DNA from: Octopus sinensis
Taxonomy: Eukaryota
Length of the DNA stretch: 64,000 nt
Assembly: GCF_006345805.1 (NCBI RefSeq)
Contig: NC_043017.1
Location: 18,104,001-18,168,000, forward strand
Direction of reading: 5' to 3'
Below, piece after piece: positions 10,480 to 41,017 of the stretch; position 1 is the first letter of the stretch, and each line of letters opens with the position of its first letter. The notes under the pieces are model-generated. The model did no database searches, was not told the DNA's origin, and saw only the letters and a list, made by a program, of their open reading frames with translations. Both the position numbers and the translations under genes were made by a program.

Positions 10480-10594
<115 letters not shown>

Positions 10595-11323: not shown

Positions 11324-11423
11324 TGCATTGTCGGTCCCAAGTCCGAATTGTTCAGGTATTCCACTGACTCAGTGAGTCCAATGAATATCTCGTCATCTTC
11401 ATTGGATGAGTTCAGTTGTTCAG
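11324..11423 (+). other. Putative short 5' exon of ZNF-B followed by a 99-nt intron
   Basis: Donor CAG|gtaaac at 11423/11424; intron 11424-11522 ends at the acceptor; near-identical arrangement upstream of ZNF-F. The 5' boundary is uncertain. Confidence 0.55.
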
Positions 11424-11825: not shown

Positions 11826-12761
<936 letters not shown>

Positions 12762-16896: not shown

Positions 16897-18229
16897 ACTT
16901 GCTTTAGCTAACATTGCCTTTTGTTGTCTTAATACTTTCAGTATTTTACTTTCTACACTCCATTTCAATGCTCGTTATTCCTCCATATCTTCAGATCAAC
17001 GCAAAGAGAAAGTTTGTATTTCTTAATGTCATTTCGGAACATTGTTTAGTCGCCATTTACCTTTATTTCTATACATACTTGACAACTCATGGTGAAATTC
17101 TGGTTTCAGCACTCCATGTACTTCCTCGTAGCTTACATATATTTTTAAAATTTACTTGCCCTTGTTTACCCTACCTACCTATCCTCTATGGTAAATTTTT
17201 ACAAGTTCACCACCATGTTCTTCACTAGAAAAAACCCCAAAGAACTTCGGATTATTCGCGTGGAATCAAGTACCCTGAACTCCTAATATGCCGCAAACTC
17301 CTTATTTTGGCTCGGAAAAAGAAGGGGCGGGGTGAGAAACCCCCCTCACAGGAATTATTGGAATTTTTTTTTAATCAATTATACCACAACATACCACAAA
17401 AGACTTTTTTATCCAGAAAAAAGATGGAGTGCAGTGGAATACACGGAAATTCACCCCACTTCCCGTATCATTGGAAAATATTTTCTTTTTTTTTTTAGTT
17501 GAATGAAATACGGTGACTTCCTAATGTGTCACAAAATACTTTTTTTCTTTTGACCGAGGTGAGGTGATGTGAAACCCTCGTAAATTTCAACCGCTCCTCC
17601 CTCATTTCATGGAGAAATTTTTTTTTTTTGCTGTTTGTTAATATATGCACAAAACACTTCTTTTTGTCCAGAAAATAGGGAGTGGTGTGGGGTGGAGTGT
17701 AACCCGCGGAAATTTCACCCCCCCCCCATCGGAATCCTTAGTCCATCAGATAAAATGCTTTGCAGCATTTTTGCTCTCTCTTTGCACACCTCATTGAAGT
17801 CAGGTTTGTCTTTCACTCTTTTCGGGTTGTTAAAATGAAGTACTACTTGAGTTTATGCCAAAAACCTGAACCAAATAAAAGAAATGTAGTAAAACGTCTA
17901 CTTTTTATAGAAATATCCTCTATATTTTATATTTGTTCTCCTTTTATTTCAGAACATAGATGATGATGCCATAAAAGAATTATTTGCCTGAGATCCATCA
18001 ATATTTATCATCTTGTGAGGACAGAAAGACTCAATGAAAAACATTACCAGCAAAAAACACAGATTAATAGCTGAATTTTCTGTCTGGAATGTGTACAAAA
18101 TGAATTTATATTCTAATTAAAATTGGATTACAAAGGAGTTTGCAGCATCTTCAAATATTAATCAAGATCACAGTTGACAAAACTATAGCAGAAGAAAAAA
18201 CATCTCCATATTGTGGAGAGCGATAAAGA

Positions 18230-19672
18230 ATGACGGAAAACAAAATGTGTGAAAGCAAAGCCCAATATAAAACACCGAGGCAAAGAGTGAATTTCCCCAA
18301 TGATATTAAGAAAGAAGAGAGGAAAATATTATATCAGTGTGATATCTGTAAAAAATCATTCTCTTATAAATGTAACTTTACAACTCACAAATGTATTCAT
18401 AAAGGAGAGAAACCATATCACTGTGATATCTGTGGTAAATCATTCTCTGTAAGTAGTCACTTAACTACTCACAGACGTATTCATACAGGAGAGAAGCCAC
18501 ATCACTGTGATATCTGTGCTAAATCATTCTCTCAAAGTAAGGATTTAACTGTACATAGACGTATTCATACAGGAGAGAAGCCATATGACTGTGATATCTG
18601 TGGCAAATCTTTCTCTGTAAGGAGTCAATTAACAACTCACAGACGTATTCACACAGGAGAGAAGCCATATCACTGTGATATCTGTGGTAAATCATTCTCT
18701 CAAAGTAATGATTTAACTGTACACAGACGTATTCATACAAAAGAGAAGCCACATCACTGTAACATCTGTGGTAAATCATTCCCTCAGAGTGGGCACTTAA
18801 CTATGCATAGACGCATTCATACAGGAGAGAAGCCACATCACTGTGATATCTGTGGTAAATCATTCTCTCAGAATGGTGAGTTAACTGTACACAGACGTAT
18901 TCATACAGGAGATACACCATATCACTGTGATATCTGTGGTAAATCATTCTCTGTAAGTAGTACCTTAACTACTCACAGACGTATTCATACAGGAGAAAAG
19001 CCATATCGCTGTGATATCTGTGGTAAATCATACGCTGACAGTAGTCAGTTAACTGTACACAGACGTGTTCATACAGGAGAAAAGCCATTTCAGTGTAATA
19101 TCTGTGGTAAATTTTTCTCTCAGGGTAGTAACTTAGCTACACATAAACATATCCATAGAGAAGGGAAACCATATCACTGTGTTACATGTGGTAAATCATT
19201 TTCCGATAGTAGCCACTTAACAAAGCATAAACGTATTCACACAGGAGAGAAACCATATCAGTGTGATATCTGTGGTAAATCATTCTCTCACAGTAGTCAG
19301 TTAACTGTACACAGACGTATTCATACAGGAGAAAAGCCATATCACTGTGTTATCTGTGGTAAATCATTCTCTGCATGTAGTACCTTAACTACTCACAGAC
19401 GTATTCATACAGGAGAGAGGCCATATCACTGTGATATCTGTGATAAATCATTCTCTCAGAATGGGGAGTTAACTGTACATAGACGTATTCATACAGGAGA
19501 GAAACCATATGACTGTGATATCTGTGGTAAATCGTTCTCTATATGCTTTAACTTAATTACACACAAGCGTATTCATACAGGAGAGAAGCCATACCACTGT
19601 GATGTCTGTGATAAATCATTCTCTGTCAATAGTGCATTAGGTAAACACAAACGGATTCATACAGGAGAATGA
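18230..19672 (+). CDS. C2H2 zinc-finger protein C (480 aa, 16 fingers; ends at a premature TGA in a linker)
   Basis: ORF track; TGA at 19670-19672 replaces AGA/AAG in TGE[R/K]PY; acceptor at 17952/17953. Confidence 0.9.
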
Positions 19673-20177
19673 CCATACCACTGTGATATCTGTGATAAAT
19701 CATTCTCTGTCAATAGTGCATTAGGTAAACACAAACGGATTCATACAGGAGAAAGACCATATCAGTGTAATATTTGTGATAAATCATTCTCTGTCAATAG
19801 TGCATTAGGTAAACACAAACGGATTCATACAGGAGAAAGACCATATCAGTGTGATATCTGTGATAAATCATTCTCTGTCAATAGTGCATTAGGTAAACAC
19901 AAACGGATTCATACAGGAGAAAGACCATATCAGTGTAATATTTGTGGTAAATCATTCTCAGGAAGTAGTAATTTGACTACTCACAAACTCATTCACACAG
20001 GAGAGAAACCCTATCACTGTGACATCTGTGGTAAATCATTCTGTCAAGCTGGTCAGGTCATGTCTCATAAACGTATCCATACAGGAGAGAAACCATTCCA
20101 CTGTGACGTGCGGTAATTCATTTGCTGAAAAAAGTCACCTAAAGAGACATATCAGTGTTCATCGTGATTCATCATGA
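19673..20177 (+). pseudogene. Post-stop finger tail of ZNF-C (3 more VNSAL fingers, GSSNL, QAGQV, frameshifted EKSHL finger)
   Basis: Finger sequence continues in frame after the TGA; 2-nt deletion (gacgtgcggtaat vs gacatgtgtggtaat in G) near 20107; ends with the homologous ...VHRDSS* at 20175-20177. Confidence 0.88.
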
Positions 20178-21949
20178 TTCTGTATCAAAATTTAGCTTGT
20201 AGGGAAATAAAATCCTAATAACTGGTTCAACTGAATGTTTCTTGATCAAATTATTTTTGTCTTTTGCTTGTTAGTCATCATCATCATATAACATCCGTTT
20301 TCCATGCTGGCATGGATCGGACAGTTTGACTGAAAACTATTAATCTGGAGAGCTGCACCATGTTCCAATCTGATTTGGCAGCATTTCTACTGCTGGATGC
20401 CCTTCCTGACATCAACCACTCCAAGAGTGTAGTGGGTGTGTTTTATGTGCTACTGGCATGGGTTCCCTTGACCTGACATGACATCAGCCACAACTACGAT
20501 CTGACTTGTCTACACAGCAAAACGATCTTCTTAATTACACAGACATGCCTGCGATGCTACTTAAATTATTTCATTGTTTTGAAATTTTATACGGCTAAAT
20601 ATTTTGTCCCTATTGTCCACTCATCAGCATCGTCGTTTTAACATCAACTTTTCCATACTTTTCTATGGGTCAGATGGACATCATTGAGGAAGATTATCTA
20701 CAGCTTGAGGCTCTCCCTATGCCCAACCCACCCTCTCCTCAAGCAAGGTAACCTTTTCCCTTCATTAGTGGCATTTTGTTTGTCTCTACGTTCTGAGTTC
20801 AAATTCTGCTGAGGTTAACTTTGCCTTTTATTATTTCGGGGTCAATAGAATAAGATGCAGTTGAGCAGTGGGCTGGGGCTGGAGGGATGTCAATGGTATT
20901 GACTGAAAATGAAACAAAAGCAATCCATAAAAAATATGAAAATTGACTGGGATATCCTAAGTAAGAGCAACAAATATGTAAATAAATAATCTATTAAATA
21001 ATCTGTTCGATAACCCGTTGGTATTTCGTTTTTATCTAATGAGAAATTTAATTTTTAATAAAAACGTTTTAACACTAATAACAGAGTTGTTAAACTGACT
21101 TGGAAAAGCCTACAAATAAATATATATAATACATGATGTGTATTTTTATGTAGGTGTGGTTATCTTGTCAGAAGCTTTCTTCCCAACCACATGGTTATTG
21201 GTTCAGTCCCATTGCATGACACCTTTGTCAAGTGTCTTCTACCAGAGCTTTGGGCTGTCAAAAGCCTCTTCAGTGGATTTGGTCGAAGAAAACTGAAAGA
21301 AGTTCATTGTGTGTGTATATATATATATATATATGTCTGTGTGTATGTCTTTTTTTCCACCATCACTACTTGACAACTGGTGTTGGTGTGTTTACATCCC
21401 CATAACTTAGCAGTTTGGCAAAAGAGATCATTACAGTAAGTACCAGGCTTTAAAAAAAAAAATCCTTATTTTGATTCATTCAATTAAAGTTCTTCAAAGC
21501 AGTGCCCCAGCATGGCCACAGTCTAAAGAGTGAAACAAGTAAAAGATGGAGGATAAAAGATTGTTAACAATAATTGCTGTTGGTTACTTTGTTGACCAAC
21601 AGGTTTAAAACCCCTTCGCCAGTGTGATCCAAGCACTGGAAGAAGTGTGTGGAGCATGAGGACTATATTGAAAACTAAACCTCATTTGGGCAGCCAATGA
21701 AATTTTCAGCCGACCCTGATAGGTCCATTTCATGAGATTTAATAAATGACTTTTTAAGTATTTATTTCATTTTTATATTTAGTTTGCAAGATTCTTCATG
21801 TGAATTCGCTTGTTGAAACGTGTGTTTGGAGGATCATAATGTCAATAATAATAAACATATGCACTGCTTCACAGACAGAGCCACAAGTTTCCTCTTAAAA
21901 TTAATGATATTGGAGAAAAGTTGTCAAGTTTATATGATACGAATAAAGG

Positions 21950-23512
21950 GATGCTGTCAGTAAGGTGAGGGTTGGCAACAAGTACAGTGAAGAATTCTGG
22001 GTAGAGGTAGGGGTCCACCAAGGTTCAGTCCTCAGCCCCCTCCTATTTATCATAGTCCTCCGGGCAATAACAGAGGAGTTCGAGACAGGATGACCCTGGG
22101 AGCTCTTCTATGCTGACGACCTTGCTGAGTCACTATCAGAACTAGAGAAGTTTCAAGTGTGGAAACAAGGATTAGAATCAAAGGGCCTTAGAGTCAACCT
22201 AGCTAAAACCAAAGTTCTAAGTAGGAAGGCAGGCAAACCACAAATCCCTTCAGGTAGAAACTCTATAAGATGTACCCAGTGTAAGCTATGGACACATAAG
22301 AGGTGAAGCAATATCAAGGGAAGGCTAACCGGGAAGATAGTTTTTGTATGTGGCAGATGCTCAGGAGAAATAAACACTGAAAATCTGCAGAGAACAACTT
22401 CCATCATTTTCCGAGGAGAAAAACTAGAAGTAGTTGATAGCTTCCATTACCTAGGTGACCAAGTCAGTAGCGGAGGAGGGTGCTCTGAAAGTGTAGCTGC
22501 TAGAATAAGAATAGCCTGGGCAAAGTTCAGGGAGCTCTTACCTCTGCTGTACGAACAGCCATGCTACATGGCAGTGAAACATGGCCATGACTACTGAGGA
22601 CATGCATAAGCTCGCAAGGAATGAAGCCCTATGCTCTGATGGATGTGTAATGTCAGTGTGCATACTCGACAGAGTGTTAGTACCTTGAGAGAAAAGTTGG
22701 ACTTAAGAAGCATTAGATGTGGTATGCAAGAGAGACGATTGTGCTGGTATGGCCATGTGGCGAAAATGGATATGGATAGCTGTATGGAAAAGTCCCACAC
22801 CCTAACAGTTGAGGGAACCTGTGGAAGAGGTAGACCCAGGAAGACCTGGGATGAGTTCGTGAAGCATGACCTTCGAACACAGCCTCACTGAGGCAATGAC
22901 TAGTGACTGGGACCTTTGGAAATATGCTGTGCTTGAGAAGACTCAGCACGCTCAAGTGAGACCATAACCTTGTGGCCTCTGCCAGGGCTGTAACCAGACA
23001 ACTTATGCATACCTTTCCTTCATTGGTCACTAACCTTTGCTTGTGAAGACCTGTTGAGGCAAGTGAAATCGAGATTGAAATCAAATTCGATGACTGGCTA
23101 GTGGAGCGCTAAGAGTACCATACGAGTGTGATCATTGCCAGAGCAACAAGCTGGCCTCCGTGCCGGTGGCACATAAAAAATACCATTCGAGGGTGATCGT
23201 TACCTGCATTGCCTTACTGGCACTTGTGGCTGGTGGTATGTCAAAAAACATTTGAGCAAGGTCATTGCCAGTTCCGCTGGGCTGGCTCCTGTGCAGGTGG
23301 CACATAAAAAGCACCTTTTGAGCGTGGCTGTTACCAGTACTGCTTGACTAGCCTTCTTGCCGGTGGCACATAAAAGCACCCACTACACTCTTGAAGTGGT
23401 TGGCATTAGGAAGGGCATCCAGCTGTAGAAACTCTGCCAGATCAGATTGGAGCCTGGTGCAGCCATCTGGTTCACCAGACCTCAGTCAAATCGGACGTTA
23501 AACGATGATGAT
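21950..23512 (+). mobile_element. 5'-truncated RTE-clade LINE: decayed RT plus ~600-bp 3'UTR ending in (GAT)n
   Basis: GVHQGSVLSPLLFIIV...YADD RT motifs; C-terminal RLCWYGHV..RGRPRKTW; tail ggacgttaaacgatgatgat. Confidence 0.9.
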
Positions 23513-23573
23513 CCATCATGGCTGACCTAGTCATTTATTTTATTTTATTGACCTAACACCAAGAAAGATGACG

Positions 23574-23730
23574 GGATCTTTTCACTTTGACCGGCAGATT
23601 TTAAAAATAATTTCTTTGTAACTAAACACTTTTAAATTTCGTATACGGGTAGAATGTGTCACATAAAACATCTTTTTCTCTTGGTATTCTTGAGAAAATT
23701 CTGTAGTTTGTAAGCTATTTCTTGTTTAAT
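23574..23730. mobile_element. Truncated left end of a GGATC-TIR MITE
   Basis: gggatcttttcactttgaccggcag...ggtagaatgtgtcacataaaacatctttttctcttgg. Confidence 0.65.
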
Positions 23731-23864
23731 TTCATCCTATTTCAGATGTTAAATGATGATGATGATGACCAAAAAGCAAAAGAAAACAAAATAATTTGAT
23801 CAAGAAACATTGTTATACGATTTATTAGATTTTATTTGCATACAAGCTGAATTTTGATACAGAA

Positions 23865-24497
23865 TCATGATGAATCACGATGAACACTGATATGTCTCTT
23901 TAGATGACATTTCTCAGCAAATGAATTACCACAGACACCACAGTGGAATAGTTTCTCTCCTGTATGGATGCATTTATGAGACGTGACCTGACCAGCTTGA
24001 CTGAACGATTTACCACAGATGTCACAGTGATAGGGTTTCTCTCCTGTGTGAATGAGTTTGTGAGTAGTCAAATTACTACTTCCTGAGAATGATTTACCAC
24101 AAATATTACACTGATATGGTCTTTCTCCTGTATGAGTCCGTTTGTGTTTACCTAATGCACTATTGACAGAGAATGATTTATCACAGACATCACAGTGGTA
24201 TGGCTTCTCTCCTGTATGAACACGTTTATGTCTAGTTAAGTTAAAGCATATAGAGAACGATTTACCACAAATATCACAGACATATCGTTTCTCTTTTGCA
24301 TGAATACTTCTGTGTACAGTTAACTCATCATTTCGACAGAAGGATTTACCACAGATATCACAGTGATGTGGCTTCTCTCCTGTATGAATAAGTTTGTGAG
24401 TTGTAAAGTTACATTTATAAGAGAATGATTTTTTACAGATGTCACACTGATATAATATATTCCCCTTCTCTTTCTTAATATCATTGTGGAAATTCAT
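23865..24497 (-). CDS. C2H2 zinc-finger protein D (210 aa from the downstream Met, 7 fingers); ancestral start at 24554 is interrupted by TAG at codon 17
   Basis: ORF track; upstream in-frame [21 protein letters not shown] matches the E/G leaders (NTQWQR); acceptor at 24841/24840. Confidence 0.88.
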   Translation of the reverse strand: MNFHNDIKKEKGNILYQCDICKKSFSYKCNFTTHKLIHTGEKPHHCDICGKSFCRNDELTVHRSIHAKEKRYVCDICGKSFSICFNLTRHKRVHTGEKPYHCDVCDKSFSVNSALGKHKRTHTGERPYQCNICGKSFSGSSNLTTHKLIHTGEKPYHCDICGKSFSQAGQVTSHKCIHTGEKLFHCGVCGNSFAEKCHLKRHISVHRDSS

Positions 24498-25539
24498 TCT
24501 TTGCTACTGTGTATTATATTGGGCTTTGTTTTCACACATTTCATTTTCCATCATTCTTTATCTCTCTCCATAATATAGATGCCTTTTTTTCTTCTGCTAT
24601 ATTTCCATCAACTGTGATCGTAATAAATATTCAAAGATGCTGCAAACTCCTTTGTAATCCAATTTTAATTAGAATATAAAATCATTTTCTACACATTCCA
24701 AACAGAAAGACAGAAAATTCAGCTATTAATCTCTATTTTTTGCTGGTAATCTTTTCCATCGAGTCTTTCTGTCCTCACAAGATGATAAATATTGATGGAT
24801 CTCAGGCAAATAATTCTTTTACAGCATCATCATCTATATTCTGAAATAAAAGGAGAACAAATATAAAATATAGAGGATATTTCTATAAAAAGTAGACATT
24901 TTACTACATTTCTTATATCTTCTTGTTTCAGATTTTTGGTTTAAACTCAAGTAGTACTTCCCTTTATCAACCCAAAAAGGGTGAAAGACAAACCCAACCT
25001 CAATGAGGTGTGCAAAGAGAGAGAAAAAATGCTGCTAAGCATTATATGAGTCGATTATATTGACACCAGTACTTAGCTGGTACTTAATTTTATTGATCCC
25101 AAAAGGATGAAAAGTTTAAGCAAACCTTATAACACTTCATAACTTTTTCTGTTTTGGGAAATTTTCAGAAAACCTTTGTGAATTTGTGTTCTACACACAG
25201 GAATTCATGTGATTATGGAAAAAAAAAGGTTGATTTTAATTCAACCTTTTTAAATATTGGAAATCCTTTGAAATCCAAATTCGCAATGTTAAAAATATTC
25301 ACACATATGCACAGCCTATTATGGATTCTGAATCAATGTACACTATGTAATCAATCATAACTTTTGTTGGTATTTTCAGAATTATTTTGTCAATTTGTGT
25401 TCTACACACTGGACCTTGTATAATTATGGGAAATAAATTTTTCAATTAAAATTTTTCCATTCTTCTTCCCACCCAATAATCCTCAAATTCAACTTAATCC
25501 ATATCAAACACAGATGTTGTTTCTCTCTAGAATACTTAC

Positions 25540-26840
25540 ATGTTAATATAGAGCCAATGACGAAGATGTCGTGATAGATTCAAGTAGTCACAACTCAGAC
25601 TGGGCAATGACAGCTTCAATATTTTACAACAAACCTTCGTTTAGGTTTTTCACATCGATATAATAAAGAAAGCTGTAGTATTATCTCTTCATATTTAATT
25701 AGCAATCATCTCTAATTAACTGGATCACCTAAATGTCTGTTATAAACTAAGGATCGGCTAAATTAGATCTGTCCTAGAAATTAAAGATGTTTATCAAACA
25801 ATAGAATAATTTAGCTCGTCTTAACAATTCTCTCTCCGCTTTCAACATAAGTCTTTATATATATTCTGGTTTCCTTGAATTATTCTTTTATCTTCTAAAA
25901 GATGTAAATGCGAGCATTTCTGGTCCGTATTACTAAAAACGGTGTCCAAACATATATATACCTCAAAATGACATGTTCCATATACTTCGGTGTGTTTTTT
26001 TTCTTCTCGTTTTAGAATAAGTTTAGAAAGTGAAAATGAAAATAAATCAACCCTTAAGATCAATATTAGATTAATGATGAAATTACGATGTCATTTTTGT
26101 GTAAAAATATTACTATGTAAAGTGGTGAAGATAATTACTTTCAATTATATTTTTATGAGTTCATATTTTGAAATAAAAGGAATCAGGGATCTAATGCAGT
26201 TTTGCACCTCTGATGGAAAAATGCATTTTTTGATAATATTTTTCGGATACGTTTAAATGTCGGAGATTACGAATATGCAAAAAAAAAAATTAGATTCACC
26301 CCACTCCTACCAGCGAATTAAAAATTTTGAATTCGTTTACTTTCAAGAGAACGTCGCGAAATGACGAACATATGCAAATCGAAATTAAATATAGACAAAA
26401 ACATTAAAGTAAAAAGAATTTGCGCTTTACTTGTGTTTGCCTTAAATAATCGTAAAACATTTTCATCCATTTATTTCTTTGTCTGTCTATTTATCCGTAT
26501 CTGTTTATATCTATCTATCTGTCTGTCTGTCTATAAACATAACTTTATGCTTACTCACCGAATAAGAAAAATCAGAAATGTGTTTTTGTGTGACTGGGTG
26601 TGAGATCCGCCGGAGAGGCGGGGCGAAATTTGAAAAATCTAAAATTAGGGAGAATGGGAGGATCTTTTCAGTCTGGCGGCCAGATTTTAATAATGAAATT
26701 ATTGTATACAGTGCTCAGGTGCACTTTGAAAATTCGGATGCTAGTAGAATGTATCACATAGAACAGGGTTTACTCTTAACGTTTTTGACAAAATTTTGTA
26801 TTTTAGAAGCCTATGATCAAGACCTTTCCCATCCGTAACC
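25540..26840. repeat. Direct segmental duplication (upstream of D), paralog at ~31500-32860 (upstream of E); inverted partial paralogs at ~14620-15290 and ~36760-37740
   Basis: Long near-identical stretches, e.g. the ORFs at 26361 and 32399 translate almost identically. Confidence 0.9.
26559..26650 (-). other. Putative non-coding first exon / GC-box promoter of ZNF-D
   Basis: Minus-strand donor TCG|gtgagtaag at 26559/26558; GC-rich GGCGGGGCG patch at ~26617; duplicated upstream of E. Confidence 0.5.
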
Positions 26841-27369
26841 GTTCCAAAGACAATGGGCGATCTTTCTTACTTTGGAGGAAATAAAAACAAGAACCAATGT
26901 AACAATACAAGAAAAAAAAATGTCCTCAAATAGTCTTAAAAAAACGACGATGGCCGCTAAGATATATTTTAGGATATTTTTTGTTTATCAACATTTATTA
27001 ACATAATAGTATAATTTTATTAAATATTCTTTCTACACTTGGCAAAACATGTAAAGTTTTGTGGGGAGCAAGAGAGTCGATTACCTTGACCCAAGTGCTC
27101 AACTCCTACTTATTTTATCGATCCCAGAAGGATGAAAGGTAAAGTCGACCATGGTGGTATTTGAACTCTTAGAGGCGGACGAGATGTTGCTAAGCGTCTC
27201 CTAGCTGTGTTGGGAATAAGTTTGCTTCCCAATCATGTAGTTTATAAGTTTAATCCCACTGGAATCACTTTGGACAAGTGTCTTCTATAGCCCTAGGCCA
27301 ACTGAAGCCTTATCCATGGATTTGGGAGAAAGAAATTGAAAGAGCTCAGTTCTCAGTCTCCTCTTCCTG

Positions 27370-28258
27370 TTCAGCATCCATTATCATCCTCCAGGCCATT
27401 ACAGAGGAATTTAAGACCGGCTACCCCTAGGAACTACTATATGCTGATCATTTCACTCTCATGACAGAATCTCTAACAGAATTGGGTAAGAAATTCCCAG
27501 TGTAGAATCAAAACCAGCAATCACAGAGCCTTAAAGTTAACTTAGCAAAGACCAAAGTTCTAGTAAGCAAGAAAATAGACAATACTCTACCACCTTCAGG
27601 TAAATGGCCTTGCTTGATATGTAGGAAAGGTGTAGGCAGAAATTCCATGCAGTGCAAGCTATGGACCTACAAGCAGTGCAGTGGAATCACAGAATGGTTA
27701 ACAGAGAAAGGAATGTTTGTGTGTGGAAGATGCACAGGAGACATGGGTAACTGACTATAATCAAATGCTCTGGAAGCTCTCTAGAGGTTGTAGAGAATTT
27801 CCGTTTCTTAGATGACCTACTCAGCAGTGGAGGAGGGTGTTCCAAAAGTGTAATTGCTAGAATAAAATGGGAAAAAAATTCAGAGAGCTTTAACCTCTGT
27901 TGGCAACCAAAGGTCTCTCTCTCTCTGAATGAAAGGAAGATTCTATGATGTTGTGTACAAAAAGCAATGATAGTGAGGTGTGGGCCCTAAATGTAGAGGA
28001 CATGCAAAGATTAGAAAGGAACAAAGCTAGTATAGTCATTGCGTGGGCAATGTTAGGGCGCATGCATAACAAAGTGCTAGTGTATTAAGGGAAAAGTTAG
28101 ACTTAAGAGGAGTTAGATGTAGTGTACAGGAGAGAAGACTGAGCTGGTTCAGTCATGTGATGTGTATGGATGAGGACGGCTGCATAAAGATGTACTGACC
28201 ACTTAAAGTGGACGAAACTCATGGCAGAGTGAGACCTAGGAAGACATAGAATGAAGTA
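27370..28258 (+). mobile_element. Older RTE RT fragment (inverted partial paralog at ~42080-42420)
   Basis: QAITEEFKTG.P.ELLYAD-like segment alignable to 22050-22900. Confidence 0.75.
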
Positions 28259-28489
28259 GAAACCAGTGGTAGAAACCTTACCAAATCAGATTGGAACATG
28301 GTGCAGCTCCCCAGCTTACTAGTTTTCAGTCAAACCGTCCGACCCATGCCAGCATAGAAAAACAGATGTTAAATGATGATGATGATGATGACCAAGAAGC
28401 AAAAGAAAAAAAAAAATTTGATCAAGAAACATTGTTATATGAGTTATTAAATTTTATTTCCCTACAAGCTGAATTTTCATACAGAATCA

Positions 28490-29466
<977 letters not shown>

Positions 29467-30753
29467 TCACGCATGATATGGTTTCTCTCCTGTGTGAATA
29501 CGTTTATGCTTCATTAAGTGGCTACTATCAGAAAATGATTTACCACATGTAACACAGTCATATGGTTTCTCTCCTGTATGAATACGTCTGTGTACAGTTA
29601 AAGTAGCATTCTGAGAGAATGATGTACCACAAATATTACACTGAAATGGCTTCTCTCCTGTATGAATACGCTTATGTCTAGTTAGGAGATTTTTTAGATA
29701 GAATGATTTACCACAGATATCACAATCATATGGTTTCTCTCCAGTATGAACATGTCTGTGAGTAGTTAAGTCACTTTTTTGAGAGAATGATCTACCACAG
29801 ATATCACAGTGATATGGCGTATCTCCTGTATGAATACGTCTGTGTATAGTTAAATGAGAATTCGTAGAGAATGATTTACCACAGATATCACAGTGATATG
29901 GTTTCTCTCCTGTATGAAGACGCCTGTGAGAAGCTAAGTTAAAACTTGGAGAGAATGATTTACCACAGATATCACAGTCATATGGTTTCTCTCCTGTATG
30001 AATATATCTGTGTGTAGTTAAGTGACTCTTTTGAGAGAATGATTTACCACAGATATCACAGTGATATGGCGTATCTCCTGTATGAATACGTCTGTGAACA
30101 GTTAATTGACAACTTACAGAGAATGATTTACCACAGATATCACAGTGATATGGCTTCTCTCCTGTATGAATACGTTTGTGTACAGTTAGATCAGCATTCG
30201 TAGAGAATGATTTACCACAGATATCACAGTGATGTGGCTTCTCTCCTGCATGAATACGTTTGTGAATTGCTAAGTAACCGTTTCGAGAGAATGATTTACC
30301 ACAGATATCGCAGTGATATGGCTTCTCTCCTGAATGAATACGTCTGTGAGTAGCTAAGTTACCACTGATAGAGAATGATTTACCACAGATATCACAGTGA
30401 TGTGGCTGCTCTCCTGTATGAATACGTCTGTGACCTACTAAGGTACTGCATTTAGAGAATGATTTACCACAGATATCACAGACATACCGTTTCTCTTCTA
30501 CATGAATACGTCTGTGTACAGTTAACTCATCATTTCGACAGAAGGATTTACCACAGATATCACAGTGATGTGGCTTCTCTATTGTATGAATAAGTTTGTG
30601 AGTTGTAAAGTTACATTTATAAGAGAATGATTTTTTACAGATATCACACTGATATAATATATTCCCATTCTCTTTCTTAATATCATTGGGGAAATTCATT
30701 CTTTGCCACTGTGTATTACATTGATTTTTTTCACACATTTCATTTTCCATCAT
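29467..30753 (-). CDS. C2H2 zinc-finger protein E (428 aa, 14 fingers)
   Basis: ORF track; acceptor at 31042/31041. Confidence 0.92.
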
Positions 30754-32596
30754 TCTTTATCTTTCTCCACAATATAGATGCCTTTTTTTCTTCTGCTATA
30801 TTTCCATCAACTGTGATCGTAATAAATATTCAAAGATGCTGCAAACTCCTTTGTAATCCAATTTTAATTAGAATATAAAATCATCTTCTACACATTCCAA
30901 ACAGAAGAGACAGAAAATTCAGCTATTAATCTCTATTTTTTTGCTGGTAATGTTTTCCATCGAGTCTTTCTTTCCTCACAAGATGATAAATATTGATGGA
31001 TATGAGGCAAATAATTCTTTTATGGCATCATCATCTATATTCTGAAATAAAACGAGAAGAAATATAAAATATAGAGGATATTTCTATAAAAAGTAGACAT
31101 TTTACTACATTTCTTATATCTTCTTTTGTTTCAGATTTTTGGTATAAACTCAAGTAGCACTTCCCTTTATCAACCCAAAAAGGGTGAAAATTGTAAAAAA
31201 ATATATAGGTTATGAGGAGTTACACAGGGTGCTGAAACCAGAATTTCACCATGAGTTGTCAAGTATGTATAGAAATAAAAGTAAATGGTGACTAAACAAT
31301 GTTCCGAAATGACATTAAGAAATACAAACTTTCTCTTTGCGTTGATCTGAAGATATGGAGGAATAACGAGCATTGAAATGGAGTGTAGAAAGGAAATTAC
31401 TGAAAGTATTAAGACAACAAAAGGCAATGTTAGCTAAAGCAAGTTTTTTAACTCACTATATTATATAGGACTACCATATAGGAATTAAAACAATATCGTT
31501 ACTTTAGGGTAATTTCTTCTTTACTTCAATTTCTTTCCATTGTCTTTAAACACATCAAAACAAAAGAATGTAGTAGAAAGAGGACACGACCTATACAATG
31601 TAGATGTTGTTTCTATCAATAATACTTACATATTAATACAGAGCCAATGACGAAGATGTCACCATAAATTCAAGTTTTACAACAAACATTCGTTTAGATT
31701 TTTCACATCGATATAATAAAGAAAGCTGTAGTATTATCTCTTCATATTTAATTAGCAATCATCTCTAATTAACTGGATCACCTAAATGTCTGTTATAAAC
31801 TAATGATCGCCTAAATTAGATCTGTCCTAGAAATTAAAGATGTTTATCAAACAATAGAATAATTTAGCTCGTCTTAACAATTCTTTCTCCGCTTTCAACA
31901 TAAGTCTTGAAATATATTCTGGTTTCCTTGAATTATTCTTTTATCTTCTAAAAGATGTAAATGCGAGCATTTCTGGTCCGTATTACTAAAAACGGTGTCA
32001 AAACATCTATATACCTCACAATGACATGTTCCATATACTTCGGTGGGTTTTTTTTTCTCGTTTTAGAATAAGTTTAGAAAGTGAAAATGAAAATAAATCA
32101 ACCCTTAAGATCAATATTAGATTAATGATGAAATTACGATGTCATTTTTGTGTAAAAATATTACTATGTAAAGTGGTGAAGATAATTACTTTCAATTATA
32201 TTTTTATGAGTTCATGTTTTGAAATAAAAGGAATCAGAGATCTAATGCAGTTTTGCACCTCTCATGGAAAAATGCATTTTTCGGATACGTTTTATATGTC
32301 GGAGATAACGAATATGCAAAAAAAAAATTAGATTTACCCCACTCCTACCATCGAATTAAAAATTTTGATTTTGTTTACTTTCAAGAGAATGTCGCGAAAT
32401 GACGAACATATGCAAATCGAAATTAAATATAGACAAAAACATTAAAGTGAAAAGAATTTGCGCTTTACTTGTGTTTGCCTTAAATAATCGTAAAACATTT
32501 TCATCCATTTATTTCTTTGTCTGTCTATTTATCCGTATCTGTTTATATCTATCTATCTGTCTGTCTGTCTATAAACATAACTTTATGCTTACTCAC

Positions 32597-32690
32597 CGAA
32601 TAAGAAAAATCAGAAATGTCTGTTTTTGTGTGAGACTGTGTGAGAGGTCCGTCGGAGAGGCGAGGCGAAATTTGAAAAATCTAAAATTTG
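32597..32690 (-). other. Putative non-coding first exon of ZNF-E
   Basis: Donor TCG|gtgagtaag at 32597/32596; paralogous to 26559-26650. Confidence 0.5.
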
Positions 32691-32701
32691 GGAGAATGGG
32701 A

Positions 32702-33248
32702 GGATCATTTCAATCTGGCGGCCAAAATTTTCAATTAATTTTAAAAAAATAATAATGAAATTATTGTATACAGTGCTCAGGTGCACTTTGAAAATTCGGT
32801 TGCTGGTAGAATGTATCACATAGAACAGGGTTTATTCTTAACGTTTTTGACAACATTTTGTATTTTAGAAGTTGTTTCGTGTTAAAGTTGTCGTATTTGG
32901 GTAATTTTAACCAATCAGTGACGTGTATTCAGCTGAAGAAAATTACTCCTGCTGTTTGTGAACAATAACTTCCGGGTCCTTTAATAAAACTCTTCTTTAA
33001 TAACCAGAGATGATTTTATAGCAAGATAAGTTTGCTGTATCAGGGTTGATTTGAGGCTAAATAACAACAAAATTATTACTGAGACAGACCAACGACAGAG
33101 CCTCTATGTGGTTGAATGACCTACTAGAAAATGTAGCCAAACTTTTTTATGTGCAGAATAGAAAAACCTCCGACACATTCAACCAGCATCCGAAGTTTCA
33201 AACTGTTTAGTTATTTTTAAAAATCTGTGACTTAGATTGAAAAGATCC
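32702..33248. mobile_element. Diverged GGATC-TIR MITE relative (left part duplicated at ~26660-26810)
   Basis: GGATC(A/T)TTTC... and ...GAAAAGATCC ends; interior ggtagaatgt.tcacata motif shared with the family. Confidence 0.55.
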
Positions 33249-33744
33249 GTAAAACTACTTTCGTACAACACTGGATATTAGCCATTATATGAACCTAGTT
33301 CCCATAACATCTATTTATTTAATACGAAAATCTGAATAGATTGAGCTAGTCAAAGGAATGCCATTATTTGGAATATAGATACTTGCTATCTTTTATTCTT
33401 TCAACTTTTCTTTAACTTTAGCTGCTTCATCAAACAGTGAAGAATAGCTCTGATTGTAATGGCTATGTGAAAAAAGGTGTTCCAGCCATGGCTATTTTGT
33501 CTTATTCTTTTCTAGAAGTAATGAATTCCTAAGCGAACATTATAAACTAATTTAAACTTGCATTCTTCTTATTTTTGAAGACGGAAATTTCATTTTTCTT
33601 TTTGTCAGGAAGAGTTGGTTGCTCTTTCTAGCGACCCGGAAGTTGTTATTCGCAAACAACAACAATAATTTTCTTCAGCTGAATACACGCCATTTATTTG
33701 TTAAAATTACCCAAATATTTTGGTAATTTCCCCATTCATCCCAG

Positions 33745-33844
33745 TGCATTGTCGGTCCCAAGTCCGAATTGTTCAGGTATTCCACTGACTCAGAGAGTCC
33801 AATGAATGTCTTGTCATCTTCATTGGATGAGTTCAGTTGTTCAG
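33745..33844 (+). other. Putative short 5' exon of ZNF-F followed by a 101-nt intron
   Basis: CAG|gtaaac donor at 33844/33845; acceptor at 33945/33946; paralog of 11324-11423. Confidence 0.55.
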
Positions 33845-34316
33845 GTAAACGTTTCTATCTACTGTTTATCAATATAGAAGAAATGTAGTTGGATGTCTTC
33901 ATATTAAGTTTCCTCTATATTTTACATCGTTTCTTTTTATTTCAGAATATCAAATGACATTGGGATACGAGAATGTTATTAACTTCAGATCCATCAGTAT
34001 TTATTATGTTTTAACGACTCAATGTCATTTAGAACAGACGTCAACCTTGGTTACATAAGTATATCTATGGAAGAATTACTTTGATATAATTGCTCCGAAC
34101 GAAAATTAATCGCCGTATACACAAGCTGATTTTATATTCTAATTGAACTTGGATTAGAAAGAATTTTGCGGCATCTTCGATTATAAAACAAATATTGTTT
34201 GAAGGAAATACAGCGGAAGAAATATTTCTTGGGAATGAAAAATAGAAAAATAGGAGAAATGAAAAAAGAAAAATAGGAGAAAAATATCAGCATTTTGTGG
34301 TGAGAGAAGAAACATT

Positions 34317-35252
34317 ATGGAAGGTCAATTGTGTAAAAATGAAGTTAAATGTGAAACGTGGTCTGAAAGTATTGATTTTCCTAATGATAAAAAGAAAGAA
34401 AAAACATTATATCACTGTGATACCTGTAACAAGTCATACACTCACAAATGTAGCTTATATACTCATAAACGTATCCACACAGGAGTTAAACCATATCATT
34501 GTGATATCTGTGGTAAATCATTCCTTATCAAAGGTCAGCTTACTACTCACAAACGCATTCATACAGGAGAGAAACCATTTCCCTGTGATATTTGTGGTAA
34601 ATCATTTTCTGAAAGTGGTCACTTAACTAGTCACAAACGAACTCATACAGGTGAGAGGCCATTTCAGTGTGACATCTGTGGTAAATCCTTTTCTGATCGT
34701 AGTTATTTAACTATACACAAACGAATTCATACAGGAGAGAAACCATATTCCTGTGATATCTGTAGTAGATCCTTCTTTGGAAGTAGTGAATTAACTAATC
34801 ACAAGCGTGTTCACACAGGTGAGAAACCACATCGCTGTGACATCTGTGGTAAATCATTCTCTGAAAGTAGTGACTTAACTAAACACAAACGTATTCATAC
34901 AGGAGAGAAACCATATCAATGTGATATTTGTGGTAAGTCATTTTCTGCAAGGTGCACATTAACTAACCACAAAATTGTTCACACTGGAGAGAAATCGTAT
35001 CACTGTGATGTTTGTGGTAAATCTTTCTCTTTAAGTTTTAATTTAACTAATCACATCCGTATTCATACAGGAGAGAAGCCACATCATTGTGATATCTGTG
35101 GTAAGTCATTCTCTCGAAGTGCTACCTTGAATACTCACAAAAATATTCATACAGGAGAGAAACCACACCAATGCGATATTTGTGGTAAATTCTTCTCTCA
35201 AAAATGTAATCTAAGCACTCACAGAAATATTCATACAGGAGAGAAACCATAA
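34317..35252 (+). CDS. C2H2 zinc-finger protein F (311 aa, 10 fingers; paralog of B)
   Basis: ORF track; finger-for-finger colinear with B. Confidence 0.93.
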   Translation: MEGQLCKNEVKCETWSESIDFPNDKKKEKTLYHCDTCNKSYTHKCSLYTHKRIHTGVKPYHCDICGKSFLIKGQLTTHKRIHTGEKPFPCDICGKSFSESGHLTSHKRTHTGERPFQCDICGKSFSDRSYLTIHKRIHTGEKPYSCDICSRSFFGSSELTNHKRVHTGEKPHRCDICGKSFSESSDLTKHKRIHTGEKPYQCDICGKSFSARCTLTNHKIVHTGEKSYHCDVCGKSFSLSFNLTNHIRIHTGEKPHHCDICGKSFSRSATLNTHKNIHTGEKPHQCDICGKFFSQKCNLSTHRNIHTGEKP

Positions 35253-35949
35253 TAACATCTGTGGTAAATCATTCTGTGATACAAGTTACTTAACTAGACA
35301 CAAATGTGTTCATACAGAAGAGAGACCATAGAACTATGAACTCTGAAGTAAATCAATCGCTCAAAAGAGTATAAAATATTTAAATAGATATTGTGTTTTG
35401 AAAAAAATAAAATCTCAGTACATGGGAAATTTTAACTTTGTTTTCGTTTTCAATAAATATAACACTTAAATACAACCATATATATATATTATATATATAT
35501 ATATATATATGTACGACAGGCACCTTGCCAACCCCCTTTGCTTGTGAAGATGTTGGGCAAGCGAAATCGAAATCGAATTGAACAGCCAGGATCCCTGGTC
35601 TGGTGGTACGTAAAAAGCACTATCCAACTCGTGGCCGATGCCAGCACCGCCTCGACTGGCTTCCGTGCCGGTGGCACATAAAATACACCAATCTGACCGT
35701 GGCCGTTGCCAGCCCCGCCTGGCACTGTGCAGGTGGCACGTAAAAAGCACCACTACATCACGGAGTGGTTGGCGTTAGGAAGGGCATCCAGCTGTAGAAA
35801 CATTGCCAAATTAGACTGGAGCCTGTGCAGCCTTCTGGCTTCCCAGAAACCCGGTCGAACCGTCCAACCCATGCTAGCATGGAGAACGGACGTTAAACGA
35901 CGATGATGATATATAATATATAGATATATAATATATATATATATAATAT

Positions 35950-36097
35950 ATATAATTCGAGACAAAACCACTATTTAAAACCAAACAGGAAAGACTTAAT
36001 CAATACATAAAATTTATTTAATTTATATTAAAATTTTATGTATTGATTAAGTCTTTCCTTGTTTGGTTTTAAAATAGTGGTTTTGTCTCGAATTATA
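35950..36097. repeat. Near-perfect palindrome, ~65-bp arms
   Basis: ataattcgagacaaaaccac...cataaaattt vs its reverse complement, with two 1-nt homopolymer indels. Confidence 0.9.
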
Positions 36098-36178
36098 TTA
36101 TATAATATTTTACTATAAAATTGGATTTAACCCTAAATCTGATTTTTCCCTGTAATTTTGGATTCATTCCCTAATATT

Positions 36179-36223
<45 letters not shown>

Positions 36224-36307
36224 AAAATTTTTAATTTTGGACATGGGGTTTCCTAAGGTTTTGTGTCCACAAAGCCAATGATTTGTCGATAGCTGGTCAT
36301 AAATTTT

Positions 36308-36695
36308 GGATCTTTTCGGTTTCAACGGCAGTTTTCAACATAATTTCTAGGTAACTAAAAAAATTAAACTTCGTATACTGGTAGAATGTGTTTATAAAAC
36401 ATCTTTTTCTCTTGGCTTTATTGAGAAAATTCTATAGTTTGTAAGGTGTTTGTTGTTTTTTTTCTTCAATTTCTGCAATTTCAACCAATCACGGACGTCT
36501 ATTGAGGTAAAAAAAAGCATTGACGTAAAAAAACAAACTGATTGAGTTTATTTACATTTGTGAAGAAAAAAAAGATACCCTTACCCCATCCCCAACTCTA
36601 ACCCAAAAACAGATTGAAATGCAATAGATCGATACTAGGGTGACAATTTCATATGACACCGCCAGAAAAAACTGCCGTTCAAACCGAAAAGATCC
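36308..36695. mobile_element. MITE with GGATC...GATCC ~28-bp TIRs and an 8-bp TSD (TAAATTTT); Merlin-like
   Basis: TIR GGATCTTTTCGGTTTCAACGGCAG / CTGCCGTTCAAACCGAAAAGATCC; TSD at 36300-36307 and 36696-36703. Confidence 0.85.
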
Positions 36696-39600
36696 TAAAT
36701 TTTCTACGTCAAGGATGTGAGGAAACGCTTGCAAGTCAAGACTTAAGTCTTAACATATATGCATCATCGGAATTTCGTCATTAATCTAATATTGATGTTA
36801 AGGGTTGATATATTTTCCTTTTCAAACTCTAAAATTATTCTAAAAACAAGGGGGGGGGGGGAAGCATATGGAACATGTCATTGTGAGGTATATAGATGTT
36901 TTGACACCGTTTTTAATGATGCGGAGAATAATACGGAACTGGAATGCTCAGATTTACATCTTTTAGAAGATAAAAAAATATATAAGGGAAACCAGAATAT
37001 ATATAAAGACTTATGTTGAAAGCAGGGAGAGAATTAATTGTTAAGACTAGCTAAATTATTCTATTGTTTGATAAACATCTTTAATTTCGAGGACAGATCT
37101 TGTTTTCAACTGACATTTAAGTGATCCAGTTAATTAGAGATGATTGCTAATTAACTATGAAAAGATAATACTGTAGCTTTCTTTAATATGTCGATGTGAA
37201 AAATTTGAATGAAGGTTTGTTGTAAAATATAGAAGTTGTGTTGAAGCTGTCATCGTCCAGTCTGAGTTGTGACTATTTGAATCTATCGTGGCATCTTCGT
37301 CAATGGCTCTATATTAATATGTAAGTATTATTAACAGAAACAACATCTACATTGTACAGGTCGTTTGTTTGGATGTGTTCAAAGATGATGGAAAGAAAGT
37401 GAAGTAAAGAAGAAATTTTCCTGAAGTAACGATGTTGTCTTAATTCCGATATGGTAGTCCTATATAATATAGTGAGTTAAAAAACTTGCTTTAATTACAT
37501 TGCCTTTTGTTGTTTTAATACTTTTAGTTTTCCTTTCCACACCCCATTTCAGTTATCTTTATTCCGCCATACCTTCAGATCAACGCAAAGAGATAGTTTG
37601 TATTTCTTAATGTCATTTCGGAACATGTTTAGTCGCCATTTACCTTTATTTCTATACATACTTGACAACTCATGGTGAAATTCTTGTTTCAGCACTCCAT
37701 GTAACTCCTCGTAGCTTACATATTTTCGTGAATTTGTGTTCTACATACGGGAATTCGGCAAAAGCAATTTTTAGAACATTTTTCGTCTCCATCCCCATAA
37801 ATCCTAAAATTCCACTCTTTCTCGAATTAAATATAAAATCATAGTTTCAAAATACAGATAGTTCGATTCCTAAATTTGTTTCTGATTATAAGTTCAAAAT
37901 AATTTTCAGACGAAAATGTGTGTGATTTAAGAGACATTTAGCTGTTGCTCTCGGCATATCCCAAGTCCACAGGGTACCTTCCTCGCTTTCTGTCACTCTG
38001 ACATGTATTGATGTTTTTCAATACTTTGTCCCCATAAAAATATACAGTGGAATGATGATGCGCCCAAGGGAGGGTTTATCGCTGGGGGTTCAAGCAAAAC
38101 AAAAACAAAAAACGTTTTGTAATTTAAATCCTTACACCCCTACCCTCCCATGCACCAAGCAGGTGTGTCTGTATTGTGTCAGAAAAAAAAAAACTTACTA
38201 ACAGAAAAGTATGCTATTATTATAAATTCTCATTTACTTATAGGTGCAGACATGGCTGTGTAGTAAGAAGCTTGCTTTCTAACCACATAGTTCCAGGTTC
38301 AGTCCCACTGCATGACACCTTAGGCAAGTGTCTTCTACTATGGCCTCAGGCCCTGCAAAGCCTTGTGAGTGGATTTGGTAGATGGAAACTGAAAGAAGCC
38401 CAAAGTGTATACATGTACATGTTTGTGTGTCTGTGTTTAATTCCCTCCCACCCCGCCATCACTGTACAACCGATGTTACTATGTTTATGTCCCTGTAACT
38501 TAGCAGTTCAGCAAAAGAAAACGATGGAATAAGTACTAGGCTTACAAAGAACAAGTCTTGGTACCACTTTGTTCGACTAAAGGCGGTGCTCCAGCATGGT
38601 TGCAATCAAACAACTGAAATAAGTAAGAGAATGTGCCTTCTTTTAAATCCCTATGGATAAATCTCAGCAGATACTTCACACTCCCCAATACCTGTGTGAT
38701 TGATATGCATTAGATCGAATTTGAGTATCCACAAGGATTATTGGGTGATAGGAGGGATGGGAAAATTTTAATAAAATACATTTTTGCACAGTTGTACAAG
38801 GTCTAATGTGTAGAACACAAATTGACAAAATAATTCCGAAAATACCAACAAAAGTTATGATTGATTACATAGTGTACATTGATCCAGAATCCATAATATG
38901 CCGTGCATATGTGTCAATATTTTTAACATTGCGAATTTGGATTTCAAAGGATTTCCAATATTTAAAAAGGTTGAATTAAAATAAACCTTTTTTCCATAAT
39001 CACATGAACTCCTGTGTGTACAAAACAAATTCACAAAGGTTTTCTGAAAATTCCAAGAAACAGAAAATGTTATGAAGGGTTACAAGGGGTGCTTAAACCT
39101 TTCATCCTTTTGAGATCAATAAAAATAAGTACCAGCTAAGTACTGGGGTCAATATAATCAGCTCTCCCCATCCCCAGATTTTCAGGCCTTGTGCCTATAT
39201 TAGAAAGGATTTTTCATTATTCTTAGGTGGGGAGTAGTCAAAATCCTTAGTCCATGCTTAGCAGCATTTTTTCTCACTCTTTACACATCTCATTGAGGTC
39301 AGGTTTGTCTTTCACCCTTTTTGGGTTGATTAAGGGAAGTGCTACCAGAGATTATGCCAAAAATTCGTCACAAATAAAAATAATGTAACAAAATGTCTAC
39401 TTTTTATAGAAATATCCTCTATATTTTATATTTGTTCTCCTTTTATTTCAGAATATAGATGATGATGCCATAAAAGAATTATTTGCCTAAGATCCATCAA
39501 TATTTATCATCATGTAAAGAAAGAAGGACTCTACAGAAAATATTACCATCAAAAAATGGAAATTAATAGCAGAATTTCCTGTCTTTTCTGTTTGAAATGT

Positions 39601-39739
39601 GTAGAAAATGATTTTATATTCTAATTGAAATTGGATTACAAGGGAGTTTGCAGCATCTTCAAATATTTATCAAGATTACAGTTGAGGGAAATATAGCAGA
39701 AGAAAAAAAAAGCATCTATATTGTGGAGAAAGATAAAGA

Positions 39740-41017
39740 ATGATGGAAAATGAAATGTGTGAAAAAAAAGCCCAACGTAATACACAGTGGCAAAGAATAA
39801 ATTTCCCCAACTATATTAAGAAAGAAAAAAGGAAAATATTATATCAGTGTGATATCTGTAAAAAGTCATTCTCTCATAAAAGTAACTTAACAACTCACAG
39901 ACGTATTCATACAGGAGAGAAACCATATCACTGTGATATCTGTGGTAAATCATTCTCTGTAAGTAGTCACTTAACTACTCACAGACGTATTCATACAGGA
40001 GAGAAGCCGTATGACTGTGATATCTGTGGTAAATTATTCTCTGATGGTAGTCACTTAGCTACACATAAACGTATCCATAGAGGAGAGAAACCATATCACT
40101 GTGATATCTGTGGTAAATCATTTTCTGATAGTAGCCACTTCACGAAACATAAACGTATTCACACAGGAGAGAAACCATATCAGTGTGATATCTGTGGTAA
40201 ATCATTTTATGATGGAAGTCACTTAACTAAACACAAACGTATTCATACAGGTGAAAAACCATATCACTGTGATATTTGTGGTAAATCATTCTCTGGAAGT
40301 AGTGACTTAACTACTCACAAACTTATTCATACGAGAGAGAAACCATACAACTGTGATATCTGTAAAATTTCTTTCTCTCAAAAAGGTAACCTAACTACTC
40401 ACAAACGTGTTCATACAGGAGAGAAGCCGTATCACTGTGATGTCTGTGGTAAATCATTCTCTCAGCTTGGTGACTTGAACACTCACAAACATATTCATAC
40501 AGGAGAGAGGCCATATCACTGTGACATCTGTGGTAAATCATTCTCTCAGAATGGTGAGTTAACTGTACACAGACGTATTCATACAGGAGAGAAACCATAT
40601 GACTGTGATATCTGTGGTAAATCGTTCTCTATATGCAGTAACTTAACTAGACATAAACGTATTCATACAGGGGAGAAGCCATACCACTGTGATATCTGTG
40701 ATAAATCATTCTCTGTCAATAGTGCATTAGGTAAACACAAACGGACTCATACAGGAGAAAGGCCATATCAGTGTAATATTTGTGGTAAATCATTCTCAGG
40801 CAGTAGTAATTTGACTACTCACAAACTCATTCACACAGGAGAGAAACCCTATCACTGTGACATCTGTGGTAAATCGTTCTGTCAAGCTGGTCAGGTCACG
40901 TCTCATAAACGTATCCATACAGGAGAGAAACCATTCCACTGTGACATGTGTGGTAATTCATTTGCTGAGAAAAGTCATCTAAAGAGACATATCAGTGTTC
41001 ATCATGATTCATCATGA
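39740..41017 (+). CDS. C2H2 zinc-finger protein G (425 aa, 14 fingers; intact member of the C/D/E/G subfamily)
   Basis: ORF track; acceptor at 39451/39452; ends with the shared ...VHHDSS*. Confidence 0.94.

Follow-up and report, generated by a model that had tools for sequence, protein, structure and literature searches.

The stretch of DNA analysed here (the window) comprises 64,000 nucleotides (nt) of the Octopus sinensis genome (assembly GCF_006345805.1, contig NC_043017.1, positions 18,104,001 to 18,168,000). It is AT-rich (GC about 0.36) and contains seven single-exon C2H2 zinc-finger (ZNF) genes, designated A-G, whose seven arrays hold 103 canonical finger units. Four of these genes, C, D, E and G, had been taken in a preliminary description of the stretch for paralogues with fixed ends and a middle diversified by the shuffling of fingers between genes. 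Our analysis indicates that the four are duplicates of an octopus-specific, effector-less poly-C2H2 gene, which have likely been remodelled under birth-and-death evolution with unequal crossover and gene conversion. Coordinates of the genes and their features are collected in Table 1.

The arrays are composed of canonical C-X2-C-X12-H-X3-H fingers with TGEKPY-type linkers, and Tandem Repeats Finder (TRF) returned a period of 84 for them. Window positions 13865-39174 are 100% identical to O. sinensis CM016879.1 (GCA_006345805.1) over 25,310 bp. The corresponding locus of Octopus vulgaris (OX597834.1, GCA_951406725.2) aligns to window positions 29533-50575 with 98.1-99.3% identity and 0.23-0.69% substitutions; the identities of these two assemblies, and a divergence of the two species ~2.5 million years ago (Mya), follow a published account (PMC10700109). 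Every array was cut into 84-nt units, which were then compared all-against-all. Among C, D, E and G the unit identities have a median of 76% and a 95th percentile of 88%, and orthologous units are 90-100% identical. The tail units of E were delimited by anchor sequences; alignment of the E tail with G by MAFFT slipped register around an inserted short interspersed element (SINE).

Table 1. Genes, finger arrays and other features of the locus, in window coordinates (UTR, untranslated region; ORF, open reading frame; aa, amino acids)
Feature	Position	Strand	Details
Gene C	17953-20298	+	5'UTR part 17953-18229; ORF 18230-19672 (leader + 16 fingers); 3'UTR to 20298
Intron-end/5'UTR block of C	17942-18229
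Finger units of C	18338-20185	+	n=22
VNSAL x4 of C	19598-19933	+
C-G low-divergence tract	19850-20298	+	Partner 40688-41138; putative gene-conversion or exchange tract
Gene D	23745-24840	-	5'UTR part 24555-24840; original ATG 24554; 3'UTR to about 23745
Intron-end/5'UTR block of D	24555-24851
Annotated ORF of D	23865-24497	-	210 aa, 7 fingers: E1-like, E2-like, ICFNL, VNSAL, GSSNL, QAGQV, EKCHL
Gene E	28361-31041	-	5'UTR part 30754-31041; ORF 29467-30753 (leader + 14 fingers); 3'UTR to 28361
Intron-end/5'UTR block of E	30754-31052
Decayed units E15-E18	28901-29473	-
Young cassette E19-E23	28481-28900	-	VNSAL x2, GSSNL, QAGQV (TGA in linker), EKSHP
SINE-like insertion in E finger 16	29154-29377	-	224 bp
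Gene G	39452-41138	+	5'UTR part 39452-39739; ORF 39740-41017 (36-aa leader + 14 fingers); 3'UTR to 41138
Intron-end/5'UTR block of G	39441-39739
Gene F	34317-35252	+	Inside the range of the four genes, other subfamily; paralogue B 11838-12761 (+)
Dispersed repeat	60583-60845		Related pieces 20299-20459, 28270-28360, 41139-41300 and >10 other sites

Shared architecture and condition of the four genes

C, D, E and G have in common the 3' end of an intron with a TTTATTTCAG acceptor, followed within the coding exon by a 5'UTR of ~277-288 nt, a leader of ~36 aa, finger 1, a 3' cassette of finger units and a 3'UTR of ~120-180 nt. The duplicated gene unit measures about 5-6 kb, with upstream and downstream flanking blocks that are 84-97% identical among the paralogues, and the paralogues are partly inverted as first described, with C and G on the + strand and D and E on the - strand. 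Since intron and flanks are both shared, the copies point to segmental duplication, and retroposition as the mechanism is ruled out. Finger 1 is 88-96% identical over 84 nt in C1, D1, E1 and G1, compared to the 76% median of all unit pairs, so that the similarity first noted for C, D and E takes in G as well. The 3' units ICxNL, VNSAL, GSSNL, QAGQV and EK[SC]HL...VH[RH]DSS are present in all four genes with 93-100% identity. The leader is not specific to these four, as A, B and F also carry a homologous intron end, acceptor, 5'UTR exon and leader type; homology of the intron end, the acceptor and the ~280-nt 5'UTR extends to all seven ZNF genes of the window. Directly after the acceptor, C, D, E and G contain a 4-codon upstream ORF (ATGATGATGCCATAA, encoding MMMP-stop, or MMML-stop in D), and the first 100 nt of the exon, which include this ORF, are its most conserved part (94-96%).

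Comparison of the window ZNF proteins with Pfam gave zf-C2H2 and zf-H2C2_2, with E values down to 1e-174, and only zinc-finger families; KRAB, SCAN, BTB and PR/SET domains were not among the matches. Each of C, D, E and G has in-frame stops immediately before its ATG, which rules out a hidden upstream effector exon. The lack of a known effector domain, stated in the preliminary description, is therefore real. A protein database search with the E ORF was dominated by vertebrate ZNFs and returned no octopus match, and a profile search with the leader and finger 1 returned five weak matches, of which the only one from an octopus was a 74-aa fragment from O. vulgaris. No record of the exact products of the C, E and B ORFs was found, and none of the window ZNF proteins was present in the protein-cluster collection in which exact matches were sought.

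The shared leader and cassette hold for all four genes at the DNA level but not as four intact proteins, since only G has both in one intact frame. In C, the linker that follows finger 16 carries an AGA>TGA stop (19670-19672), behind which lie three more copies of VNSAL together with GSSNL and QAGQV; a 2-nt deletion at about 20108 shifts the frame in the last finger. C is a probable pseudogene or truncated gene. The leader of D is interrupted by a TGG>TAG change (24504-24506), and its ORF restarts at an internal methionine. E is truncated, with a pseudogenised tail: a 1-nt deletion ends the frame after finger 14, and the tail (28481-29473) contains indels, stops and the SINE. Within it, E15 is interrupted by indels and a stop, E18 falls 2 nt short of a full unit and contains stops, and a TGA lies in the linker of E22. 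A 13-bp target-site duplication without mismatches, CACTGTGATACCT, flanks the SINE (29141-29153 and 29378-29390); relatives of the SINE in the window are two tandem copies at 52815-53275 (89-91% identity) and scattered fragments, and ARAGORN called no tRNA-like gene in the SINE region. VNSAL itself is present in 4, 1, 2 and 1 copies in C, D, E and G, respectively, and with this variation and the lesions in C, D and E the ends of the arrays are not the invariant anchors that had been proposed.

In the O. sinensis annotation, the model of gene D extends over 5.3 kb (23865-29174, - strand), with its 5' end within the decayed tail of E, which may reflect read-through or a shared transcript.

Unit order and remodelling of the arrays

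When numbered after the units of G, the array of C reads G1, G2, (C3-C9), G3, G4, (C12, C13), G9, G10, G11 x4, G12, G13, G14, and that of E reads G1, E2, (E3-E13), G4, G5, G6, G7, G10 (decayed), G11 x2, G12, G13, G14. D consists of E1, E2, G10, G11, G12, G13 and G14. The account of D as the first two fingers of E joined to the terminal five units was confirmed: D1 and D2 are 96% and 95% identical to E1 and E2, the two parts are joined in register, and the junction from E2 to ICFNL falls at a unit start, in the conserved TGTGATATCTGTGGTAAATC framework. The match of finger 14 and the decayed tail of E to G4-G7 was likewise recovered, with identities of 92, 78, 88 and 87% for E14-E17.

All inter-gene unit pairs with at least 90.5% identity are colinear. 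Among reciprocal best matches, each of the six gene pairs shows 0-3 inversions, all of which stem from the multi-copy QNGEL-type unit (C7 and C14, E13, G9). C has a QNGEL-type unit on both sides of its DSSH unit, and E13 can be matched colinearly to C7-C9. The VSSHL, DSSH and QNGEL units, which had been said to occur in different contexts in C and G, follow the same relative order in both (C2/C11/C14 = G2/G4/G9), with insertions between them. No order-breaking exchange of middle fingers was found in the unit comparisons among C, D, E and G, nor were non-colinear mosaic products from donor cassettes found, as would mark programmed diversification of the VSG/pilin or V(D)J-like kind, the unit order being colinear. 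A combinatorial DNA-binding repertoire generated by shuffling, as had been envisaged, does not fit reciprocal-best units that are colinear in every gene pair apart from the QNGEL-type inversions.

The middle of C alternates between two unit types, a V type (C2, C4, C8, C13) and a Q type (C3, C5, C7, C9, C12, C14). TRF found higher-order periods of 168 and 252 bp in C and of 252 bp in E, where E7-E8 resemble E10-E11, and among the VNSAL copies of C, C17 matches C19 at 100%, with C18 at 98%. For 8 of the 12 middle units of C, and for about half of those of E, the nearest relative lies within the gene itself, which points to amplification in situ. The middle units of E have their nearest relative inside E in five cases and outside it in six, where it is mostly the near-consensus unit C2. 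Between related units, non-synonymous differences per pair amount to 0.43-0.50 at helix positions -1, 2 and 3 compared to 0.11 at other codons, and synonymous differences are ~0.05 everywhere. The differences among the C, D, E and G arrays are whole-unit deletions, local amplifications of 1-3 units and substitutions at helix positions.

The comparison with O. vulgaris covers E1-14, F and G. The G protein is identical in the two species, its 1278 nt differing at three synonymous sites; F agrees in length and shows two substitutions (the protein differs by two residues); and the leader and fingers 1-14 of E keep the same order, with one substitution and a 3-nt indel. In all, ~38 units are unchanged in number and order between species that separated ~2.5 Mya, which is at odds with the PRDM9-like turnover suggested for these arrays. 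The O. vulgaris orthologue of E (locus positions 1-1221, - strand) is annotated with 542 aa, compared to the 428-aa ORF here; from this length alone, some of the E lesions may be specific to O. sinensis and the tail less decayed in O. vulgaris. The O. vulgaris annotation has G contained in a same-strand gene model of 490 aa with a SEP/UBX domain (locus positions 7579-21278, +).

Exchange between paralogues and the explanations compared

Quartet-informative sites favour the grouping (C,G),(D,E) at both ends of the genes (13/18 and 6/10). Divergence between C and G is 12.9% (78/603) in the 5' part, from the acceptor through finger 1, and 2.4% (11/449) in the 3' part, from the last VNSAL up to and including the 3'UTR (Fisher p=2e-10 against the 5' part). 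The 3'UTR alone has 2 differences in 124 positions, and divergence climbs again in the downstream repeat; a tract of this kind, flanked by higher divergence on either side and taking in non-coding sequence, is what concerted evolution by ectopic gene conversion would leave. The trend for D and E is the opposite, with 3.8% in the 5' part and 6.6% in the 3' part (test of the C-G to D-E ratio, p=6e-8). Region-wise Fisher tests were used in place of a run-length permutation test, the p values of which (0.0002-0.04) are confounded by the non-homologous 3' flank of D.

A sharp discontinuity is also found in the tail of E. E18 is 25-30% diverged from C15, D3 and G10 (25% from G10), which are themselves 6-8% apart, and the adjoining E19 differs from C16 by 1.2%, or one site, which is the stop mutation of C. 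E20-E23 are 2-5% from their partners; E19-E21 are 1-2% from C16, C17 and C20, and E22-E23 are 4-5% from C21, G13 and G14. The step between E18 (25% from G10) and E19-E23 (~4% from G11-G14) is significant (Fisher p=8e-8). The best reading of the E18/E19 boundary, on the sequence evidence, is a recent conversion or exchange tract, and such a tract is favoured by the untranslated state of the E tail, where selection is unable to act. We infer that the segment 28481-28900 of E was converted from a C-like donor. Judged from these divergences, the detectable exchange homogenises the 3' ends and does not diversify the middle. The likeness of the 84-bp unit to a minisatellite, as drawn in the preliminary description, thus extends to whole-unit changes in copy number and to exchange between paralogues, but not to the swapping of middle fingers.

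Birth-and-death evolution of a duplicated gene is the explanation that we consider likely, on the observed flank homology, colinearity, unit indels, lesions, divergence discontinuities and stability between species. C, D, E and G would go back to tandem and inverted duplication of one poly-C2H2 gene. Whole units would have been lost or amplified inside the arrays through out-of-register recombination or replication slippage among highly similar finger frameworks, and the first and last units would have been kept through such events, being anchored by unique flanks. Substitutions would have gathered in the DNA-contacting helix codons, short conversion or exchange tracts between paralogues would have homogenised the 3' cassette, and disabling mutations together with the SINE insertion would be killing three of the four copies, the net outcome being the birth-and-death evolution of a lineage-specific ZNF cluster. 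In tandem arrays generally, unequal crossover changes the interior copy number, and the flank-anchored first and last repeats are always kept. This edge effect yields fixed ends and a variable middle without any special system; however, five 3' units rather than one are kept here, and conversion between paralogues adds to their similarity.

Several points weigh against this explanation. The recombination events are deduced from their end products, none having been observed; the mechanism of recombination, the direction in which sequence was converted and any function are our inferences. At 84 nt the units are short, and identity already reaches 75-88% between those that are not orthologous. 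The orthology of near-consensus middle units is ambiguous (C2, E4, E7 and B8 at 92-93%), and some transfer of middle units between genes is possible. Synonymous divergence in the cassette is 2-8% (1-4 sites), which is no significant reduction relative to the flanks; plain purifying selection may account for part of the cassette conservation, and selection probably contributes to the similarity of the cassettes besides exchange. Single-base indels could be long-read assembly errors, as C, D and the E tail were read in one assembly, and the cross-species test spans just ~0.2-0.7% divergence.

In a purely vertical history, internal indels and point mutation after duplication would account for the arrays without any exchange between paralogues, and the cassettes would be alike by purifying selection alone. 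Such a history agrees with the (C,G),(D,E) grouping at both ends and with a cassette in which non-synonymous divergence is low and synonymous divergence resembles that of the flanks. It is nevertheless improbable, as it does not account for the fall in C-G divergence, which includes the non-coding 3'UTR, or for a dead tail in which strongly diverged E18 adjoins an E19 almost identical to C16. An artefact of assembly, in which repeat collapse or mis-joining made chimeric arrays, the run of four VNSAL units and the frameshifts, would be in keeping with the difficulty of assembling 84-bp repeat arrays and with the fact that several lesions are 1-2-nt indels. However, every unit of E1-14, F and G recurs in the independent O. 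vulgaris assembly, at 0.2-0.7% substitutions, several other lesions are substitutions (AGA>TGA, TGG>TAG, GGA>TGA), and the SINE has a clean 13-bp target-site duplication, so that we regard an artefact as extremely improbable.

The active diversification originally proposed, in which units would be repeatedly swapped between neighbouring paralogues to give combinatorial repertoires between functionally invariant anchors, draws on the shared ends, on middles that differ in number and identity, on the exchange between paralogues that does occur, and on the QNGEL-type unit, which lies to one side of the DSSH unit in E and to the other in G. Against it, this multi-copy unit is the sole exception to colinear order in the six gene pairs, the middle units of C are mostly nearest to one another and those of E are split 5 to 6, and the exchange tracts detected fall on the supposedly fixed cassette rather than on the middle. 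Copy number varies even within this cassette, disabling lesions are present in three of the four copies, O. vulgaris has identical E1-14, F and G arrays, and no associated machinery or signal sequences were seen in the window. With this evidence we find such a system very unlikely. It is also unlikely, though somewhat less so, that finger 1 and the five-finger cassette form a functional anchor module of an octopus-specific, effector-less subfamily, kept by selection and conversion with the middle free to vary. If this were true, the module could stand in for a KRAB-type domain by recruiting a partner, or could bind a common repeat, and the two-part architecture of anchor and variable region would be one not yet described for invertebrate ZNFs.

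Known systems and neighbouring features

Albertin and colleagues reportedly described clustered, tandemly duplicated C2H2 genes in octopus in 2015. Such clusters are documented in the genomes of O. sinensis, A. fangsiao and O. bimaculoides (PMC9795677; PMC12513265), in analyses of cephalopod C2H2 genes at the level of genes and expression; gene conversion, unequal exchange and pseudogenes are unmentioned in one of them (PMC12513265). The present genes resemble this cephalopod expansion in coming from the same species and in being clustered tandem duplicates in a SINE-rich setting. Lineage-specific poly-ZF paralogues almost always differ in finger number, the main cause being deletion or duplication of whole fingers (Emerson and Thomas, PMC2604467), and GENECONV finds short conversion tracts in them (PMC2604467). 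A 'drifting and shifting' of arrays has been reported among close paralogues (Kauzlaric et al., PMC5363842). Gain and loss of fingers with short conversion tracts is therefore the documented norm (PMC2604467; PMC5363842) rather than an undescribed diversification system, and the finger-level map given here adds new detail, beyond the two cephalopod papers cited, on a known process.

The octopus genes and vertebrate poly-ZNF clusters such as those of the KRAB-ZNF family are alike in their tandem and inverted duplicates, in having all fingers in one exon, in changes in the number of whole fingers, in change at contact residues (positive or diversifying), in short conversion tracts and in frequent pseudogenes. 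They differ from KRAB-ZNF genes in being without KRAB, SCAN or BTB, with only a 36-aa leader, and from the vertebrate clusters in the mollusc host and in a five-finger 3' cassette common to all four copies. With PRDM9 they share the 84-bp tandem finger unit, changes of copy number through unequal exchange and a concentration of variation in the helix (at -1, 3 and 6 in PRDM9; the octopus units were measured at -1, 2 and 3). Unlike PRDM9, they have no PR/SET, KRAB or SSXRD domain, and their units are ~76% identical at the median; change has taken place between paralogues over millions of years and not between alleles, and the E1-14, F and G arrays are unchanged between the two octopus species.

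The locus offers a finger-by-finger case of the remodelling of octopus C2H2 arrays, with loss and gain of units, helix substitution, 3' homogenisation and rapid gene death, and shows that mollusc ZNF clusters obey the same rules as vertebrate KRAB-ZNF clusters, effector domain or not. It is also of value for annotation, as E, and probably C, is truncated or pseudogenic and the leader of D is broken, and it can be used to gauge conversion rates across more octopus haplotypes.

Of the neighbouring genes, B and F have ten fingers each, which are 1:1 colinear without unit indels at ~81% nucleotide identity; unlike C, D, E and G, they have diverged by substitution only. Each lies ~5-6 kb upstream of a C/G-type gene, which suggests that B-C and F-G represent a duplicated two-gene module. 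Relic finger units are found right after the stops of A, B and F (4025-4099, 12765-12833 and 35255-35330, + strand; E=3e-18 for the F relic), and truncation of arrays by nonsense mutation is thus common at the locus. A dispersed repeat, recognizable by spurious ORFs of the type '...LDALPNANHS...', lies immediately behind the 3'UTR in C, E and G, though not in D, and one of its copies contains a 63-bp tandem repeat (x4.2, 96% matches).

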